From Pseudomonas aeruginosa PAO1 (GTDB taxonomy: Bacteria > Pseudomonadota > Gammaproteobacteria > Pseudomonadales > Pseudomonadaceae): a stretch of DNA of 64,000 bases. Shown piece after piece: positions 39,576 through 53,794 of this stretch. Both the position numbers and the translations under genes were made by a program. The notes beneath the pieces are model-generated. The model was not told the DNA's origin and did no database searches. It saw only the letters and a program-made list of their open reading frames with translations. The DNA is taken from assembly GCF_000006765.1 (NCBI RefSeq), contig NC_002516.2. The stretch is one strand, 5' to 3'. How positions within the stretch are numbered: position 1 is the stretch's first letter; each line of letters starts with the position of its first letter.

Positions 39576-39833
39576 TCAGCGATTGTCCGCCTGCGGGCGC
39601 ACGGCTTTCAGCCCGGCCATGGATATCCGGTAGGGCCTGCCCTGGCGGGAGTGGACCAGGCCCTTGTTCTTCAGCCTGGAGAACACCGCCAGGGTGCAGT
39701 CGAGCAGCAGGTGGCCGTCGCGGTTGTAGCACTCGACGCGGGTGATCTTGCCCGAAGCGTCGCGAAGGAAGGCGATATGGCCGCCCTGGGCCAAGGCGTG
39801 AAGCGTCCGTTGTTCCGGCTTGGAAACGTTCAT
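39576..39833 (-). CDS. YjhX/TopAI-family toxin (UPF0386), 85 aa
   Basis: [20 protein letters not shown]...[11 protein letters not shown]...[18 protein letters not shown] matches the family pattern; ATG at 39833. Confidence 0.8.
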
Positions 39834-39952
39834 GTCGGTAGAACCTGTAATCATCGGTGTGACAACGCGGCCGCACGGCGCGAAAAGGCGCGTGCGAGCC
39901 ATGGCGAAGGCAGATAACCGGCGACACCTCGTGCGGGATGACGAAGTGGCGG

Positions 39953-39979
39953 TTATCGGATGACTACTATCTCCAACAT
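39953..39979 (-). CDS. Candidate regulatory leader peptide MLEIVVIR
   Basis: GAGG-N5-ATG TTG GAG ATA GTA GTC ATC CGA TAA, 120 nt upstream of the toxin ATG, embedded in RNA stems. Confidence 0.65.
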
Positions 39980-40172
39980 GCAAGCCTCGGATCGGGGAGG
40001 GCGCAGCCACGAAAGCGTGCTGCGATGCGGCAGTCTAACGAAGCTGGCGAAGCGACGGCAAGGAACTGCCTGCGTCGCCATGCCGCTGTGCGACGCTTGC
40101 GGCTTTGTGAGGGAGTTCGCCTCGCCCCGCGGCGGTCCGCGCTTTCATTATCGGGGGAAGCGGGAGGTATCC

Positions 40173-40466
40173 ATGTTTCGCACGGCGCTGACGCTGTTCA
40201 TGTCTTCGTTGGCAATTCCTGCCGTCGCCTCGATGAGATGCGGCACGCACCTGGTGGACGAGGGCGACAGCGTCGAGCAAGTCCTGGAAAGGTGCGGGCA
40301 ACCGCTGAGCAGGATCGTCAACGAGCCTGCCCTGCGCAACAACGGCGTGCCCAAGTTGAATGCCGCACGCACCGAATTCTGGGTGTATGGCCCCAGTGGA
40401 GGCGTCTACCGACACTTGCGCTTCATCGATGGCAAGCTGGTCGAGATTCGGCTCGAGCGGAAGTGA
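40173..40466 (+). CDS. DUF2845-like secreted small protein
   Basis: GGGAGG RBS, signal peptide, MRCGTHLVDEGDSVEQVLERCGQP. Confidence 0.8.
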   Translation: MFRTALTLFMSSLAIPAVASMRCGTHLVDEGDSVEQVLERCGQPLSRIVNEPALRNNGVPKLNAARTEFWVYGPSGGVYRHLRFIDGKLVEIRLERK

Positions 40467-40697
40467 TACGAGGCTGTTGAGGAGTTATTCCTACAGATAA
40501 TTACTAATTTGCTGCGGGACACCGTGAAAGAGCGCTGAGAGAGAAGACGAGCCGGGTGCGGGCCTAGGTGGATGCGTCTTCCGTCGTGTAGGAATTGCCC
40601 GATATCGGGCGGCGGGGCGGAAGGTTGCGGGCCACCCTGATCGCATACCTGAAAAGTTGGCGGCGTAATCTCCGCGATTTTCAGGCGAGGACGCGTC

Positions 40698-41174
40698 GTG
40701 TTGAAGTTATTGGTCGTGGTTGCTTCCCTGTTCATCGGCGGAGGCATGGCCATGGGAGAGCCTGGGGGGGCGGATGGGTTTTCCGCTGTCGCAGCGGTCG
40801 ATCCGGGAGCGAACCCCGAAGCGCAACTGGACGAGGAGCCCCAGGAGGTCAGCGAAGCGCCGGCCTATCGCGTGGATGACCTCACCTTCCTGTACCTCAC
40901 CCATGAGGTCTATCTGGAACCCTACGTTTCCTGCCGTCCGAAAGTCCTGGGCGAACGTTCGTACGTCGCCTGCTGGAACGAAACCTATTCCGGCCGCTCC
41001 CCGCTGAATTTCTGGGAATACGACGGGGGCGACTTCCTCGCCCTCAACGACCCGGCACGTGTGTTGGCCGAGGGAAAGTTCGCCAGCGAGCAGCGCATCG
41101 GCGAAGCGCCCCTGCCGCTGCCCCTGGATATCGATCTGGACCAGTTGGAGCGGGCCTACTCGCTGATGATGTAA
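40698..41174 (+). CDS. Hypothetical exported protein
   Basis: GAGG before GTG, hydrophobic N-terminus, acidic body, host-like codon usage. Confidence 0.72.
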   Translation: MLKLLVVVASLFIGGGMAMGEPGGADGFSAVAAVDPGANPEAQLDEEPQEVSEAPAYRVDDLTFLYLTHEVYLEPYVSCRPKVLGERSYVACWNETYSGRSPLNFWEYDGGDFLALNDPARVLAEGKFASEQRIGEAPLPLPLDIDLDQLERAYSLMM

Positions 41175-41260
41175 AGGAGAGGAACCTTCCGGCTGCGTCT
41201 CCGCCGAAATCCATGGGGCGCTTCCGATCTTTCCCGGGCTTTACGCGGTAAAGCCTGAAA

Positions 41261-41299
41261 ACAGAAAGCCCCTGGCACTGGTTGGTGTCAGGGGCTTTT
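41261..41299 (-). terminator. Original host tRNA-Gly terminator displaced by the prophage (likely bidirectional)
   Basis: AAAGCCCCTGGCAC-N6-GTGTCAGGGGCTTT with A/T tracts on both sides, just left of attL. Confidence 0.8.
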
Positions 41300-41310
41300 G
41301 CATTGGGATC

Positions 41311-41337
41311 TGGAGCGGGCGAAGGGAATCGAACCCT
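41311..41337. repeat. attL (duplicate of the tRNA-Gly 3' end)
   Basis: TGGAGCGGGCGAAGGGAATCGAACCCT identical to 53721-53747. Confidence 0.97.
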
Positions 41338-41430
41338 TTAAAATAGGGTTTTGAAGCGTTCCTATACATTCTAATGCCACTGCCTTCGATTTTTAGGCGT
41401 CTTACTCCGTAGCTCTTCGTGTCATTGATT

Positions 41431-41447
41431 TCGACACATTTTCGACA
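41431..41447 (+). promoter_or_regulatory. Candidate integrase arm-type sites (left arm)
   Basis: TCGACA direct repeat with 11-bp period; the same pair occurs at 53637-53653. Confidence 0.55.
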
Positions 41448-41462
41448 GGTCCTGCATGAGGA

Positions 41463-41491
41463 TTGCATTTTTATCCTGGTTGCTTTATGAT
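41463..41491 (+). promoter_or_regulatory. Sigma70 promoter of the ncRNA-RT-effector operon
   Basis: TTGCAT-17bp-TATGAT; predicted +1 at about A41498. Confidence 0.8.
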
Positions 41492-41497
41492 CACCTT

Positions 41498-41570
41498 ATG
41501 CCAAGACTAGGAGCAGCTCCAGTCACAAATGGCCTCTACAGTCGTCTAGTCTCCTGTTTACGTTTGTGTT
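41498..41570 (+). ncRNA. phrD: PhrD sRNA / candidate retron msr
   Basis: Starts at the predicted +1; closed by AGACTAG(41504-10)/CTAGTCT(41546-52) stem with internal GGAG-CAG-CTCC hairpin; PhrD identity and 3' end recalled from the PAO1 annotation. Confidence 0.65.
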
Positions 41571-41623
41571 GCCCTTTAGGCTCGGCTCGGGCTCGATGCC
41601 TAAAGGGCTTCACAAATAGTAAA
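41557..41623 (+). other. Long msd-like hairpin
   Basis: TTTAC-G-TTTGTG-TT-GCCCTTTAGGC ... GCCTAAAGGGC-TT-CACAAA-TA-GTAAA (22 paired positions); no U-tract on either strand. Confidence 0.75.
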
Positions 41624-41624
41624 T

Positions 41625-41750
41625 CCCCGCTCCCCGCTCCCCGCTCCCCGCTCCCCGCTCCCCGCTCCCCGCTCCCCGCTCCCCGCTCCCCGCTCCCCGC
41701 TCCCCGCTCCCCGCTCCCCGCTCCCCGCTCCCCGCTCCCCGCTCCCCGCT
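41625..41750. repeat. Perfect heptamer tandem repeat (CCCCGCT)18
   Basis: 126 nt, 18 exact units plus CCC; complement (AGCGGGG)18. Confidence 0.98.
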
Positions 41751-41968
41751 CCCTCGATCTTTTACTCATCCCCTCTGCTCTGGGTCTACCGTTTTTCTCT
41801 ACTGGGACTATCACGCCTTTGCGTCCTTCTCCCTTCCATTGTACCTTCTATGCGCTGTGCTACGAGCTTTATGGTGAGTCTTGTTCGCACCAATGTACAT
41901 TTATTGCTGTTGGCTATCGACTGGGTTCCAATATACGATGGAACCATAGATTTCTCGGCAGATGAGAT

Positions 41969-42925
41969 ATGAAGAAGAGACCTTTAGAAGATCTTTTTTT
42001 TGCGATGTACAGAGGGAAGCAGAGTTTCGAACACTTTGCCAATTGCTCTGTCGAAGGTTTATATGAGCCGGTGATGGTGAATGGACGACTCGTATATAAA
42101 ACCGATAAGGATCTGCGTGCGTATCATCGGTTTCTAAATAAATTCTTGTTTGAAAGGCTTCCTGTTGTTGATGATGTTGTGTTTTCTTATCGTAAAGGTG
42201 TTAACGCCGTAGATGCTGTCGAAAAGCATGCAGGTAGTAAGTTTTATTTTCAAACTGATTTAAGGGATTTCTTCAGTAGTCTAACTAAGTCTGATGTTAG
42301 AAGAACTCTGGAATGGGCGAAAGATGTTTGTGTTATTTCAGACTTAGATGTTTGGGTTGAGAGAATTCTGAAGTTGGTTACTATTGGTGATTCTTTGCCG
42401 ATGGGGTTTTCGACTTCCCCTGCAATTAGCAATGCATGCTTATACTCTCTGGATGGGATATTAAAGACGCATTGTTTAAGTAATGGTGTTATATATACTC
42501 GTTATGCAGATGATCTGATTTTTTCCTCGTCGAACAAGCAGGCGCTTGATCCTTTGTTTGGGGTCGTGTGTCGTACCCTCCAATCTGAGTTTTCAGGGCG
42601 GATGGGAATAAATTCACAGAAGACAAAGTACCTAAGAAAGGGGGGGAAAATTAAGCTGCTGGGGCTTAATGTTCTTCCTAATGGAAGAGTTACTGTGGAT
42701 ATGCGGCATAAAAAAGAAATAGAGGTTCGTCTTTTTTATTACGTAAAAGACAGAGCTAGGTTTTTGAAGATCATGGGCGAGGTGGATGATGAAAAAGCTA
42801 TTAAGAAATTCTCTGGTTTAATAAACTACGTAAATACTGTTGATCCGGCTTATCTTGATAAGCTTCGCAAGAAGTATGGCTTAACGATTGTTGATATGTT
42901 TATTCATAAATCACCGAAGCTCTAG
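41969..42925 (+). CDS. Retron-type reverse transcriptase, 318 aa
   Basis: FSYRKG, TDLRDFFSSL, LPMGFSTSPAISN, YTRYADDLIFS, INSQKT, KLLGLNV; no maturase, endonuclease or fused domains. Confidence 0.92.
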   Translation: MKKRPLEDLFFAMYRGKQSFEHFANCSVEGLYEPVMVNGRLVYKTDKDLRAYHRFLNKFLFERLPVVDDVVFSYRKGVNAVDAVEKHAGSKFYFQTDLRDFFSSLTKSDVRRTLEWAKDVCVISDLDVWVERILKLVTIGDSLPMGFSTSPAISNACLYSLDGILKTHCLSNGVIYTRYADDLIFSSSNKQALDPLFGVVCRTLQSEFSGRMGINSQKTKYLRKGGKIKLLGLNVLPNGRVTVDMRHKKEIEVRLFYYVKDRARFLKIMGEVDDEKAIKKFSGLINYVNTVDPAYLDKLRKKYGLTIVDMFIHKSPKL

Positions 42926-42927
42926 GT

Positions 42928-44253
42928 ATGAATTTTCAGATAGTAATAAATAATATCCAACATATTGGTTACGCTGAGCTTGATGTTGATTTAAATGCTA
43001 GTGGAATTATCTGTATAGTCGGGAAGAATGGAGTAGGAAAGACTACTCTAATTAAGGCTATTTTAAATTTAAAGTCTGCCGACACATTTTCTAGAACCGC
43101 CTCGCCTGGTATTTTTAAGGCTAATAGCTCAATGCGCTGTACCTATGGAGAGAACTCATATGAATTCTCTTTTGATTCAGATATAAATGATCTAAATAGC
43201 CGATCCCCTATTCCTGAAGAGTTAAAGTCTGTCATAGACGTTGAGTTACCTATGCCCTTTGGGCAGCGATTTAATAACTATCAAAATATTATGAGCGCGG
43301 ATATGGATATAAGAACCGCGTTGATATTGGGTGAGTACGAGGTACCCGTAGAGCTGATTAGCTTCTTAAGTGATATTTATAAGACCAATAAATTTAATGG
43401 ATTGGTAGAGGTCTCTGCAAAGGGGGGAAGTTACTATTGTATCCCTTTAGATGATGATCGATATGTTCGCGAAGATCACCTCAGTTCTGGAGAATTTTTT
43501 TTAATTAGTTTGTATAGGAAGATTAAGGGGCGTAGTAAGTTTATTGTCATTGATGAAATTGATATTTCTCTAGATGCTGCGGCGCAGGCCCATTTAATTG
43601 GCTGGCTGCGGCGCTTTTGTACAACGGAACAGGTAAAGGTTGTTTTTACTACCCACTCGCTAGCATTGATGAGGACATTAAAAGACGGTGAGTTGTTCTA
43701 TATGGAAGAAAGTGAAGGGAAAGTTAGTGTAATTCCTTCGTCATATAATTATATTAAAAGTGTTTTGTTTGGGTTTAAAGGGTGGGATAGATATATTCTG
43801 ACAGAGGATGCGATGTTGAAGTCTTTGTTGGAGTATGTTTTGGCTAACTATTGTTCTGGTCTTTTTTTTTCTTATCAGATTATCCATGTCGGTGGCGGGA
43901 GTAATGTGGTTGATCTGATGCGCCAAAATTCCACCGAAGGGTTTTTCTCGACGCCCGAAAATGTCATTTCGGTGCTAGATGGGGACCAAGCGGAGTATCG
44001 GTATGCTAGACGGCCCAATGTTTATTGCATTCCATTCTTGAGCGTTGAGAAAGCAATTTTTGCAGAGTACAAGGCCGGAAGATTTTTGCCGGAATTGGCG
44101 CCTGATCCTCGATTTGATACGCCCAAGAATTTTTGTTCGGCAATAGGTCGCGACCGACATGCAACTGAAGCGGATATAATTAAGTATCTTTGTGATAGTT
44201 ATCCAACGGAAGTGCGTAGATTTGCGCAAACCCTTAGTGACTTCCTTAGTTGA
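42928..44253 (+). CDS. ABC-type ATPase fused to a TOPRIM domain (OLD-like retron effector)
   Basis: GKNGVGKTT, LSSGE, FIVIDEID, TTHS; then ILTED, HVGGGSNV, VLDGD (TOPRIM E...DxD) and SVEKAI; 2 nt after the RT stop. Confidence 0.85.
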   Translation: MNFQIVINNIQHIGYAELDVDLNASGIICIVGKNGVGKTTLIKAILNLKSADTFSRTASPGIFKANSSMRCTYGENSYEFSFDSDINDLNSRSPIPEELKSVIDVELPMPFGQRFNNYQNIMSADMDIRTALILGEYEVPVELISFLSDIYKTNKFNGLVEVSAKGGSYYCIPLDDDRYVREDHLSSGEFFLISLYRKIKGRSKFIVIDEIDISLDAAAQAHLIGWLRRFCTTEQVKVVFTTHSLALMRTLKDGELFYMEESEGKVSVIPSSYNYIKSVLFGFKGWDRYILTEDAMLKSLLEYVLANYCSGLFFSYQIIHVGGGSNVVDLMRQNSTEGFFSTPENVISVLDGDQAEYRYARRPNVYCIPFLSVEKAIFAEYKAGRFLPELAPDPRFDTPKNFCSAIGRDRHATEADIIKYLCDSYPTEVRRFAQTLSDFLS

Positions 44254-44541
44254 TGGCATATATTCTCGGGGCAGCATGTGTTTGTCGCAGCAATCGAACC
44301 CAATTTTCTACTTACGCCTAGAATGCGGAACTAATTTCTCAGTGCTGACCTGTGAGAGGTGATTGAGGGGTAAGGCGGGAGTCATCGCAATTCTCATGTT
44401 TTCTCGGAGTTTTTGGGGGGGGGCTTGACCAAGGAAGTTAAGGACAATCGTCGTCTATGAGATTACCGTATCCTTGTCAGCTTCATTTCTTGCCTTCCAT
44501 CCGTAGGGCATACCATCGCAATGCTACTTTTCTAGTGATCG

Positions 44542-44808
44542 CTATCCCGCGTTTTGATTGGACAAGTTTCGATTGGCTTCGTCATAGTCGGGGCTAGTTT
44601 GGCCGACTTCTGGGGCGATGGAACCGCTTGCAATCCATAATGCGTAATTAGGGAAAATTTTTACTAGGACGTCGATTTCTTCCGTGCTCACGCGAATCGC
44701 GCCTTTGCTGACGCTTTTCCATCTCTCGTAATCGCCCCCGTGAAGGCTGACCTTTTTGGGGCCGATTTTCTTGATTAATAGTCTTGCTCTATCGGCTGAC
44801 GTGCTCAT
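44542..44808 (-). CDS. pf4r: Pf repressor C (immunity regulator), 88 aa
   Basis: MSTSADRARLLIKKIG...YALWIASGSIAPEVGQTSPDYDEAN; divergent from the excisionase. Confidence 0.9.
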   Translation of the reverse strand: MSTSADRARLLIKKIGPKKVSLHGGDYERWKSVSKGAIRVSTEEIDVLVKIFPNYALWIASGSIAPEVGQTSPDYDEANRNLSNQNAG

Positions 44809-44885
44809 ATAGAAATTTATTCCGGGGAAATAGTTGCCCTGACGTGGCTTTGGGGAAATAATTTCTCCAGGGTAATTATTTCTCT
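44809..44885. promoter_or_regulatory. Array of pseudo-palindromic operators between pf4r and xisF4
   Basis: GGGGAAATAGTTGCCC (44824-39), GGGGAAATAATTTCTCC (44852-68), AGGGTAATTATTTCTCT (44869-85), weaker TAGAAATTTATTCC (44810-23). Confidence 0.6.
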
Positions 44886-44926
44886 AGCTGCGTATGGCTA
44901 ATGCCACGAATAGTGACGGAATGAGC

Positions 44927-45142
44927 ATGGAACTGGAAGAGCTTAGCCCCAGTGCCCTGATAGGGCCGCAACAGGATGTGGAGTCCATCGAACGGTGGGC
45001 GGAGCGCAACGGCATCAGCTACGGCACCGCTCGCGCCTGGGTTTACCGGGGTGTGCTGCCGTCGGTGAAGCTGGGGAAGCTGCGCATGGTGAATAGCGCG
45101 CTGCTGCGTACCTGGCTGTTGGAACAGGAATGGAGTGCCTGA
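44927..45142 (+). CDS. xisF4: Excisionase / HTH activator
   Basis: SIERWAERNGISYGTARAWVYRGVLPSVKLGKLRMV (MerR/Xis-like HTH); start 44921 or 44927. Confidence 0.88.
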   Translation: MELEELSPSALIGPQQDVESIERWAERNGISYGTARAWVYRGVLPSVKLGKLRMVNSALLRTWLLEQEWSA

Positions 45143-45143
45143 T

Positions 45144-45356
45144 ATGCGCTACCTCGTAGAGATTTGCACCTTCCACGGCCCGACACGGCAACGTCGCTGG
45201 CATCGCGTCCATCAGGGCGGTTCCCGCGTGGAATGCCAACGCTGGGTCGAAGAGTTGGTGGCTGTCTTCCCGACTGAAGAAGAAGCTCGCCGCTCCTTCG
45301 GCCTGACCCGCGAACGCGCTCGGCAGGTGTACCGCATCCGTGGGGTGAGGGCATGA
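45144..45356 (+). CDS. Pf phage hypothetical protein (PA0717-like), 70 aa
   Basis: GGAG RBS; ATG directly after the xis stop; conserved position in Pf genomes. Confidence 0.75.
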   Translation: MRYLVEICTFHGPTRQRRWHRVHQGGSRVECQRWVEELVAVFPTEEEARRSFGLTRERARQVYRIRGVRA

Positions 45357-45359
45357 ACC

Positions 45360-45650
45360 ATGGCCGCCAGTCCCTACTACCTACGCCAAACCCACGCCCC
45401 GGACTGCGCCTGCTCTGTGTGCTGGTCCGCAAGGCAGGTCATCCCATTGCACAGCCCGTCGCCGTGTCCAGACTGTCGGCCCCCTGGGCTGCCCTATCTG
45501 GAAGGTGGCCGCTGGCTCTGCCGTCCCCGTTCCTTCTGCGCGAAACACGACCCGTCCCGGCGTCCGCCGAAGTACTGGCACGTTGTGTACGACAGCGGGA
45601 AGCCCACGCCCTTTGTGCCCGTGCGCGAAGCATTCCAACTGGAGGGCTGA
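45360..45650 (+). CDS. Pf phage Cys-rich protein (PA0718-like)
   Basis: CACSVC, CPDC and C..FC..H putative zinc-binding motifs. Confidence 0.75.
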   Translation: MAASPYYLRQTHAPDCACSVCWSARQVIPLHSPSPCPDCRPPGLPYLEGGRWLCRPRSFCAKHDPSRRPPKYWHVVYDSGKPTPFVPVREAFQLEG

Positions 45651-45653
45651 ACC

Positions 45654-46031
45654 ATGCTTGCTAAGACCCTGAAAGCGCTGCTCCTGCTCTGCCTGATCCA
45701 GGCCGCCCGCACCGTGGCCGATCCGGTCAAGGGCCGCGCTCCCGGCTCGTCGGAACAGCCTCACCGTTCCGGCGAACGGAAGCACGGGCGGAGCGCACCC
45801 TTGAACGCCTCCCCCCTGAAACAGCCTCCGCTGGGGAGTGTGGGGCAGCTTCTCCGCCCCGCGCTCCCGAGCCCTCGGCGGCAAGAGCGGGATGACAAGG
45901 GCAGAGCCCTTGGTGTTGCTCTGCGGGTTCCAAGGGGAAGCGTTCCCCTTGGCCGTCGGAGACGACGTTGCGATAGGGATCGTTCCCCGAATGGGCCGAG
46001 ACGAACACCCGTGGTTGGCTTGGTTCGCTAG
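45654..46031 (+). CDS. Pf phage hypothetical ORF (PA0719-like), overlapping a hairpin-rich region
   Basis: GGAGG RBS and hydrophobic N-terminus, but the remainder coincides with dense DNA secondary structure. Confidence 0.5.
45727..45952. other. Hairpin cluster, candidate ssDNA origin / packaging signal
   Basis: TCAAGGG/CCCTTGA + GCGCTCC/GGAGCGC stem (45727-45804) enclosing CCGTTC/GAACGG; perfect CCAAGGGGAA-GCG-TTCCCCTTGG (45930-52). Confidence 0.5.
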
Positions 46032-46165
46032 CGAATAGAGCCCGGCCCGAAGGGATCGCCCGACAAATCACTTTCACCCAACACCGCTGAATGAAGGCGA
46101 AACAGCCGAATTTGCAGCAGCGGGACAACTCACGCCGAAAAAGGCGAATTGAAGGAGAAACACCG

Positions 46166-46600
46166 ATGAACATGTTTGCAACCCAAGGCGGCGTCGTCGA
46201 ACTGTGGGTCACCAAGACCGACACCTATACCTCGACCAAGACCGGGGAAATCTACGCCTCGGTCCAATCCATCGCCCCGATCCCGGAAGGTGCCCGTGGC
46301 AACGCCAAGGGATTCGAGATCAGCGAATACAACATCGAGCCGACCCTGCTGGACGCCATCGTCTTCGAAGGCCAGCCGGTGCTCTGCAAGTTCGCCAGCG
46401 TGGTCCGTCCGACCCAAGACCGTTTCGGCCGGATCACCAATACCCAGGTCCTAGTGGATCTGCTGGCCGTGGGCGGCAAGCCGATGGCGCCGACCGCCCA
46501 AGCCCCGGCCCGCCCGCAAGTGCAGGCCCAAGCCCCGCGCCCGGCCCAGCAGCCGCAGGGCCAGGACAAACAAGACAAGACCCCGGACGCCAAGGCGTAA
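46166..46600 (+). CDS. Inovirus single-stranded DNA-binding protein (gene V equivalent), 144 aa
   Basis: AAGGAG RBS; MNMFATQGGVVELWVTKTDTY... with Q/P-rich tail, as in Pf1 SSB. Confidence 0.9.
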   Translation: MNMFATQGGVVELWVTKTDTYTSTKTGEIYASVQSIAPIPEGARGNAKGFEISEYNIEPTLLDAIVFEGQPVLCKFASVVRPTQDRFGRITNTQVLVDLLAVGGKPMAPTAQAPARPQVQAQAPRPAQQPQGQDKQDKTPDAKA

Positions 46601-53720: not shown

Positions 53721-53747
53721 TGGAGCGGGCGAAGGGAATCGAACCCT
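53721..53747. repeat. attR
   Basis: 27-bp repeat identical to 41311-41337; comprises the tRNA T-arm and acceptor 3' end. Confidence 0.97.
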
Positions 53748-53794
53748 CGTCATGAGCTTGGGAAGCTCAGGTAATGCCATTATACGACGCCCGC
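53721..53794 (-). tRNA. tRNA-Gly(CCC)
   Basis: GCGGGCG...TGAGC-TTCCCAA-GCTCA...GGTTCGATTCC...CGCCCGC-TCCA; 74 nt with encoded CCA. Confidence 0.97.

Follow-up and report, generated by a model that had tools for sequence, protein, structure and literature searches.

Type I-B1 retrons, which Mestre et al. (2020) defined by a reverse transcriptase (RT) of clade 1, have a structured non-coding RNA (ncRNA) upstream of that RT and, downstream of it, an ATPase-Toprim protein that carries the motifs EDxxL and DxD, and Dot et al. (2023) placed the effector in Class 3B of the OLD family. The best mechanistic analogue is Eco8, a type I-B2 retron solved by cryo-electron microscopy and activated by the single-stranded DNA-binding protein of phages, which follows the same logic of RT, ncRNA and OLD-family ATPase-Toprim. 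Type I-A retrons (Ec78/Eco7 and Ec83/Eco4) comprise an RT, the ATPase PtuA and the HNH protein PtuB, and their ncRNA includes, besides a long hairpin that serves as template and a termination sequence, a conserved 'clamp' that is single-stranded and a 'handle' hairpin gripped by the thumb of the RT. The same architecture of ABC-ATPase and Toprim is found in Class 1 and 2 OLD proteins (P2 Old, T. scotoductus OLD and Gabija GajA), which act alone or with GajB, without an RT and ncRNA. Here we analyse a 64-kb stretch of DNA from a PAO1-like Pseudomonas aeruginosa (the window; adding 744,000 to a window coordinate gives the record coordinate for loci whose RT is identical). At the left end of its Pf4 filamentous prophage lies a cassette that we take, with a probability of roughly 0.78, to be a type I-B1 retron carried as accessory cargo: an ncRNA, an RT and an OLD-family nuclease in which, by analogy, cDNA synthesis and restraint of the nuclease would serve abortive infection. 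Nothing essential separates it from other type I-B1 retrons; what marks this copy is its seat in a filamentous prophage and an array of 18 heptamer copies.

The cassette looks complete and is made up of the following features, in window coordinates.

41463-41491, plus strand: promoter of the ncRNA (phrD), with TTGCAT at 41463-41468, a 17-nt spacer and TATGAT at 41486-41491, read directly in the sequence
41498-41628, plus strand: conserved retron I-B1 ncRNA, matched by a covariance model (74.4 bits, E 2.4e-14)
41498-41571, plus strand: PhrD, a published 74-nt small RNA (sRNA), the 5' (msr-like) part of the ncRNA, placed by primer and length
41556-41624, plus strand: long msd-like hairpin of about 29 pairs, with a conserved base (UUAC with GUAA) and a variable, covarying body
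41624-41753, plus strand: C-rich heptamer tandem array (period 7, 18.6 copies, 100% matches)
41906-41968, plus strand: conserved block (three closest relatives) directly ahead of the RT start
41969-42925, plus strand: retron RT PA0715/PfrT, 318 aa, with a YADD active site and LPMGFSTSP
42928-44253, plus strand: effector PA0716, 441 aa, an ABC/SMC-type ATPase with Toprim, OLD-family Class 3B, starting 2 nt after the RT

Both proteins are retron components over their full length. In a comparison with PADLOC, proposed as a check in a preliminary description of this locus, the RT matched the model RT_I-B PDLC02937 end to end (E 3.7e-140), the next 24 matches being models of other retron RTs, and the effector matched ATPase-Toprim_I-B PDLC02914 over its whole length (E 1.3e-197); the second pair of I-B models in PADLOC reached only E 8.5e-39 with the RT and E 4.3e-09 with the effector. 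The RT also carries RVT_1 (E 1.1e-17), and 14 of its 15 matches among PDB sequences are retron RTs, in the order of an unnamed 'Retron' entry (22et), Ec78/St85-family and Ec83, then Eco8, Ec86 and Ec67, the weakest of the 15 being a group II intron maturase (E 2.1e-05). Its best NCBIfam match, retron_St85_RT, scores 184 bits and falls under the 235-bit cut-off, which explains why public annotation calls it just 'reverse transcriptase domain-containing protein'.

The effector, which bears the domain signatures AAA_21, AAA_15 and ABC, has kept in 38 homologues an invariant Walker A (G32..K38-T39), ABC signature (S186..E189), Walker B (D209-E210) and H-loop (H243), together with the Toprim residues E293-D294..L297 (EDAML, that is EDxxL) and D351-G352-D353 (DxD). 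Since these ATPase and Toprim residues are invariant in the family, the protein looks catalytically competent. A sequence comparison with the PDB returned generic ABC transporters only, and kinship with OLD and PtuA emerged from a fold comparison: when an AlphaFold2 model built from the 38 homologues (pLDDT 86.5) was searched with Foldseek, T. scotoductus OLD (6p74) came top, followed by the PtuA of retron Eco7/Ec78, GajA and Septu PtuA, with the Eco8 effector at rank 46. The TM-scores are low, about 0.4, which is to be expected of multi-domain proteins in different conformations, and sequence identity to the Class 1 and 2 OLD proteins is 12-16%. Type I-A retrons, which provide some of the closest solved RTs and the closest solved ATPase folds, differ in that their nuclease is a separate HNH protein, whereas here it is a fused Toprim domain. 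The effector also exists in a 329-aa form (P0123, standing for 65 member sequences) with 100% identity to the first 71% of PA0716, which may reflect truncation of the allele in some strains or an artefact of contig ends.

The preliminary description had assigned the locus to type I-B and given Eco8 as the example. The type stands, with full-length PADLOC matches, retron matches in the PDB, a fold like those of OLD, PtuA and GajA, and the covarying ncRNA described below; the subtype, however, is I-B1 and not the I-B2 of Eco8, whose effector is a distant structural relative only, because the effector has EDxxL and DxD and lies downstream of a clade 1 RT, as in the definition of Mestre et al. (2020). 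The marks of type I-B2 are a clade 3 RT, EGxxE as Toprim motif IV and an effector upstream, and here the motif is EDAML and the effector is downstream. The clade 3 RT of Eco8 matches at E 7.5e-18, against 6.5e-23 for clade 1 relatives, and its effector, on the other side of the RT and 743 aa long against 441 aa, gives no sequence match to PA0716.

The three parts are inherited together. A scan of one genome per species yielded 80 related loci, spread over Gamma-, Beta- and Epsilonproteobacteria and Bacteroidota, whose RTs are 35-50% identical, and an effector homologue follows the RT directly in all of them (80/80). A covariance model, made from 30 sequences with the shared structure, finds exactly one RNA beside the RT in 81 of 83 sources. 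RTs of the family also occur on about 25 IMG/VR viral contigs of 6-48 kb, and the model matches 24 of 25 such contigs; in five contigs with more distant RTs it finds no match. The whole window contains a single match, at 41498-41628. An Rfam search of 40000-46500 (E<=1) returned no retron or PhrD family, and gave one chance snoRNA match within the ATPase gene. Because a Pf4r-like repressor lies nearby in just one of the 80 loci, the module is not tied to Pf phages.

The promoter hexamers agree with the consensus at 8 of 12 positions, which is why a promoter scan, for which they lay below threshold, did not list them. Two observations support the promoter: the published promoter-less phrD clone starts at 41498, 7 nt past the -10 hexamer (primer in PMC6344545), and hexamers resembling -35 and -10 elements stand at the same place in related loci. 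From the RNA start to the ATG of the RT the leader measures 471 nt, in line with the length of about 470 nt given in the preliminary description, and the stem-loops and the tandem repeat noted there are present. The leader is nevertheless neither one structured RNA nor an msr-msd of unusual length: only the first ~130 nt are conserved, and what follows is a hypervariable C-rich repeat and then a spacer. In BLASTN comparisons of the leader with related loci the first ~75 nt alone recur upstream of the RT, and 20 nt at 41505-41524, part of PhrD, are found with at most three differences in 71 of the 80 loci. The fold of 41498-41628 has a z-score of -4.9, with none of 200 shuffled sequences as good.

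The RNA has a conserved structure, in which a helix, P1, pairs the extreme 5' end of the RNA (41500-41503) with 41530-41533 and encloses a near-invariant hairpin, P2 (41505-41524). There follow an unpaired conserved block at 41534-41538 (72-100% per column, at least 90% at four of the five positions) and the long msd-like hairpin, whose base columns at 41558-41561 and 41619-41621 are highly conserved and whose loop is 11 nt longer in the window than in the closest relatives. G41505, G41510, G41513 and G41522 are conserved at 100%, and most of P2 at 97-100%. Loci set side by side repeat the order of upstream promoter-like hexamers, 5' helix, inner hairpin, unpaired block and long hairpin; short hairpins followed by one long variable hairpin fit the textbook msr/msd layout of retrons, and the elements of the type I-A ncRNA have plausible counterparts here. 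In the alignment 95.2% of cells form pairs, against 78.9% in shuffles and 28-42% in controls with slid partners, and changes on both sides are seen in 21 of 26 pairs, all five pairs of the 5' helix and all 13 of the long hairpin covarying. Pairing of the linker with the 3' flank extends the long hairpin in several lineages but is not seen in the window. In the centroid structure of the window and of Pseudomonas relatives the linker at 41546-41552 can also pair with the 5' arm of P2 (41504-41510), a possible alternative conformation that is not conserved family-wide.

With its first nucleotide at 41498, where the phrD cloning primer begins, and a length of 74 nt, PhrD runs to about 41571. On this placement the published sRNA is the front (5') part of the conserved retron I-B1 ncRNA. 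Its 3' end falls 12-16 nt into the 5' arm of the long hairpin, which is compatible with trimming by RNase H after cDNA copying and equally with cutting of the 29-pair stem by RNase III. The strongest candidate for a priming G is G41505, at position 8 of the RNA and next after the 5' strand of the terminal helix. In a solved type I-A retron the priming G has the same ordinal, position 8, but the template geometry does not fit, and the candidate is not reconciled with the position of the template.

The RNA gene lies on the strand opposite the RT, 55-155 nt upstream of it, in 24 of the 80 related loci, mostly from Betaproteobacteria (L010, L013, L018, L019, L023-L025, L027-L031, L035-L037, L041, L045, L046, L049, L051, L052, L056, L058 and L064). 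RNA and RT are therefore separate transcripts in these loci, which must have an RT promoter of their own. For the window, the conserved block at 41906-41968 may hold a separate RT promoter and the ribosome-binding region. A 169-aa open reading frame (ORF) that runs through the leader (41456-41965) was dismissed as a gene: its start precedes that of the RNA, it is open only since the heptamer array reads as a 7-residue repeat (SPLPAPR units), and its frame is not stable, strain arrays differing by unit numbers (17 or 7 against 18) that are not multiples of three.

The cassette could work as follows. The RNA is transcribed from its own promoter; its PhrD half, a short helix around a near-invariant hairpin, is probably the handle gripped by the RT, and its 3' half is the long variable hairpin, a structure such as retron RTs use as template for multicopy single-stranded DNA (msDNA). 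By analogy with the type I-A retrons Ec78 and Ec83 and with the type I-B2 retron Eco8, the complex of RT, RNA and cDNA would keep the nuclease inactive until a phage product disturbs it, and the freed PA0716 nuclease would then cut DNA and abort the infection.

Several points weigh against this reading. In the literature examined no msDNA is reported for an I-B1 retron, and Table 1 of Mestre et al. (2020) lists the subtype without a described member. The RT departs from the canonical motifs, with AVEKH at the NAxxH position and LLG at the VTG position in an alignment to solved retron RTs; the preliminary description had seen these departures and had suggested a divergent subtype, but A83, V84, H87, L231 and G232 are invariant or nearly so in 25 RT homologues, so that they are a trait of the clade and not a peculiarity of the window copy. 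The pair counts come from an alignment that had been fitted to the model, so that the proportion of paired cells is inflated; the structure is nevertheless secure, because the margin is large and compensatory changes are visible by hand. The msr-like and the msd-like part are not enclosed by an inverted repeat; helix P1, in which the RNA's 5' end pairs locally, closes before the hairpin, and the complementarity of the block after P1 to sequence 3' of the hairpin does not exceed chance (a mean of 4.82 of 7, with 4.75 in shuffles). That block was tried as an a1 strand pairing 3' of the hairpin and rejected, its complementarity being at the level of shuffles and visible in some betaproteobacterial loci only; a second a1/a2 candidate, 41504-41516 with 41775-41787, was discarded as well, since it would take its 5' arm from the conserved P2 and its 3' arm from sequence past the array of variable copy number. 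What has been reported of a defence phenotype in MPAO1 is weak, and the sequence in which the deletions were made confounds it; other roles have been published for the same parts, PhrD as a regulator of rhlR and, as far as the citing papers relate, the RT as a driver of Pf4 genome reduction.

The missing enclosing repeat invites a tentative reading, which we consider unlikely, that the I-B1 RNA has a non-canonical layout, with the handle closed by the helix of its own 5' end and the template hairpin standing outside it. If so, PhrD would be the processed msr of this retron, and the stop of the RT at the foot of the hairpin would coincide with the point at which the published genome-reduced Pf4 variants lose their left-hand cargo, which would give a retron RT a mechanistic part in reshaping a prophage genome; the amounts of RT and nuclease made would be tuned by the hypervariable C-rich array.

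The retron itself is not new, being already annotated as Retron-I-B in PAO1. A 2023 paper in PLoS Pathogens states that Pf4 'encodes a 5' retron element', and 'Retron-I-B' is listed among the defence systems of PAO1 or MPAO1 in two studies (PADLOC, DefenseFinder). When Retron-I-B was removed from MPAO1 in a series of sequential deletions, susceptibility rose in a phage-specific manner. The RT has also been named PfrT and treated in other work, as PA0715, as a global regulator. What may go beyond the existing papers is the recognition, family-wide, of PhrD as the 5' half of the retron RNA, the non-canonical closure of that RNA, and the variable array. Three lines of work, on the quorum-sensing sRNA PhrD, on the 'global regulator' PA0715 or PfrT and on the 'Retron-I-B' of PAO1, concern one tripartite retron, and the analysis provides a family-wide RNA model for a subtype that has no biochemically described member. 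Phenotypes of phrD and PA0715 mutants may need to be read again, because disturbing one part of a retron can unleash or silence the nuclease.

Among the alternatives, the likeliest, though we consider it rather unlikely, is that the RT and the RNA mainly serve the life cycle of Pf4, through a genome-reduced superinfective form that appears in biofilms, defence being secondary or absent. The preliminary description had mentioned a report that links the RT and PhrD to Pf4 genome reduction, and papers that cite it (PMC12328805 and PMC12395586) confirm this: as they relate, Guo et al. (2024) reported that PfrT and PhrD drive the formation of superinfective Pf4 with a reduced genome. The same Pf4 region was also lost by deletion in an independent evolution experiment. 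With the offset of +744,000, the left end published for that deletion maps to the foot of the long hairpin on its 5' side, the place at which one would expect a retron RT to halt, and a link between the two is possible. A role confined to Pf4 sits poorly, on the other hand, with a trio that is conserved across the four bacterial groups and almost always away from a Pf4r-like repressor, and it leaves the conserved and apparently intact nuclease without an explanation. The two roles are not mutually exclusive.

It is improbable that PhrD is an independent, Hfq-dependent sRNA that activates rhlR and merely lies beside an unrelated RT operon. The published effect on rhlR, seen also in E. coli (PMC6344545), speaks for such a role, but the PhrD sequence stands beside the RT in 81 of the 83 sources, from many genera without an rhl system, and in the 24 divergent loci the RNA has flipped its orientation to the RT and yet stayed adjacent. 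This co-distribution largely refutes the exclusive form of the idea; moonlighting of the retron RNA as a regulator in PAO1 is possible.

We give very little credence to the reading that the whole leader of about 470 nt, with the heptamer array, is the msr-msd, in which case the cDNA would carry a G-rich repeat. A weak inverted repeat (41504-41516 with 41775-41787) would allow it, and C-rich repeats recur after the RNA in four loci; two distant loci have C-rich arrays of their own (a 6-mer in 13 copies and a 9-mer in 15). The 5' arm of that inverted repeat, though, lies within the near-invariant P2. The array begins at the end of the conserved ncRNA and lies outside it. Seven PAO1-like genomes (L081-L087), with leaders otherwise identical to that of the window, have 18, 18, 15, 17 and 7 copies, and two have Ns at this place in public assemblies; short-read assemblies probably misreport the array. 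A relative with an RT 88% identical has four heptamer copies, and in one with an RT 78% identical different, unrelated C/T-rich repeats replace the array. Of the 57 loci with RNA and RT on one strand, 22 have a G-poor tract (C at least twice G) after the RNA, and of the 24 divergent loci none has. The restriction of such tracts to co-oriented loci points to a role for the array in how transcription proceeds from the RNA gene to the RT gene, and away from one in the RNA itself. Rho loads on C-rich, G-poor, unstructured tracts. One possibility is that the array dampens transcription that reads through into the RT, for instance by loading Rho; the array is a fast-evolving C-rich spacer between the two genes and no part of the functional RNA.

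That the RT belongs to another group of defence RTs (DRT, UG or Abi) or is a remnant of a group II intron is barely credible: the absence of canonical NAxxH and VTG motifs and the sub-threshold NCBIfam score would suit it, but the best 25 PADLOC matches and the top 14 PDB matches are all retrons, with the group II maturase at E 2e-5 only and the Drt2 and Drt3a models at E 1e-5 to 5e-8.

The setting of the type I-B1 retron in the prophage is defined by three further features.

41311-41337: attL core, an exact 27-nt copy of the 3' end of tRNA-Gly (CCC) and the left edge of the Pf4 prophage
53721-53747: partner att copy, inside the tRNA-Gly(CCC) gene at 53721-53794
44542-44808, minus strand: Pf4 repressor gene, downstream of the cassette, with an excisionase gene

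The window has one tRNA-Gly(CCC) gene, and the exact duplication of its 3' 27 nt brackets a Pf4 prophage of about 12.4 kb. The preliminary description had placed an AT-rich cassette just inside attL, with a promoter of 17-nt spacing, a 318-aa RT with YADD and LPMG..TSP and, 2 nt later, a 441-aa ATPase-Toprim protein, and all of these were recovered: G+C is 34-46% in the cassette against 60-68% in the flanks, the fall beginning immediately inside the left repeat, and the order from attL is promoter, structured RNA, 7-nt tandem array, RT ORF and ATPase/Toprim ORF. In the phage GenBank collection the cassette found no match by megablast, the sole match being 147 nt of att-proximal sequence from another Pf phage; a viral contig of 12,385 bp in IMG/VR (L091) encodes an RT 100% identical to that of the window. 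In a published survey, the retron was found in two of 12 Pf phages of clinical isolates.

The neighbourhood of the cassette varies among relatives. The chromosomal flank to the left of attL carries a gene of the YjhX_toxin family (PF09857) and an acetyltransferase gene (39576-40010 on the minus strand of the window, 608-865 in L081). In L090 (3055-5110), whose RT is 78% identical, the retron is followed by an ATPase gene (AAA_15/AAA_21) on the opposite strand and a gene of 235 aa; these may be a second defence pair, which suggests a defence island. In one complete genome (L085) an integrase gene and a ParE-type toxin gene precede the RT cassette in place of the chromosomal flank, an arrangement suggestive of a tandem pair of Pf prophages or of Pf integration at a different site.

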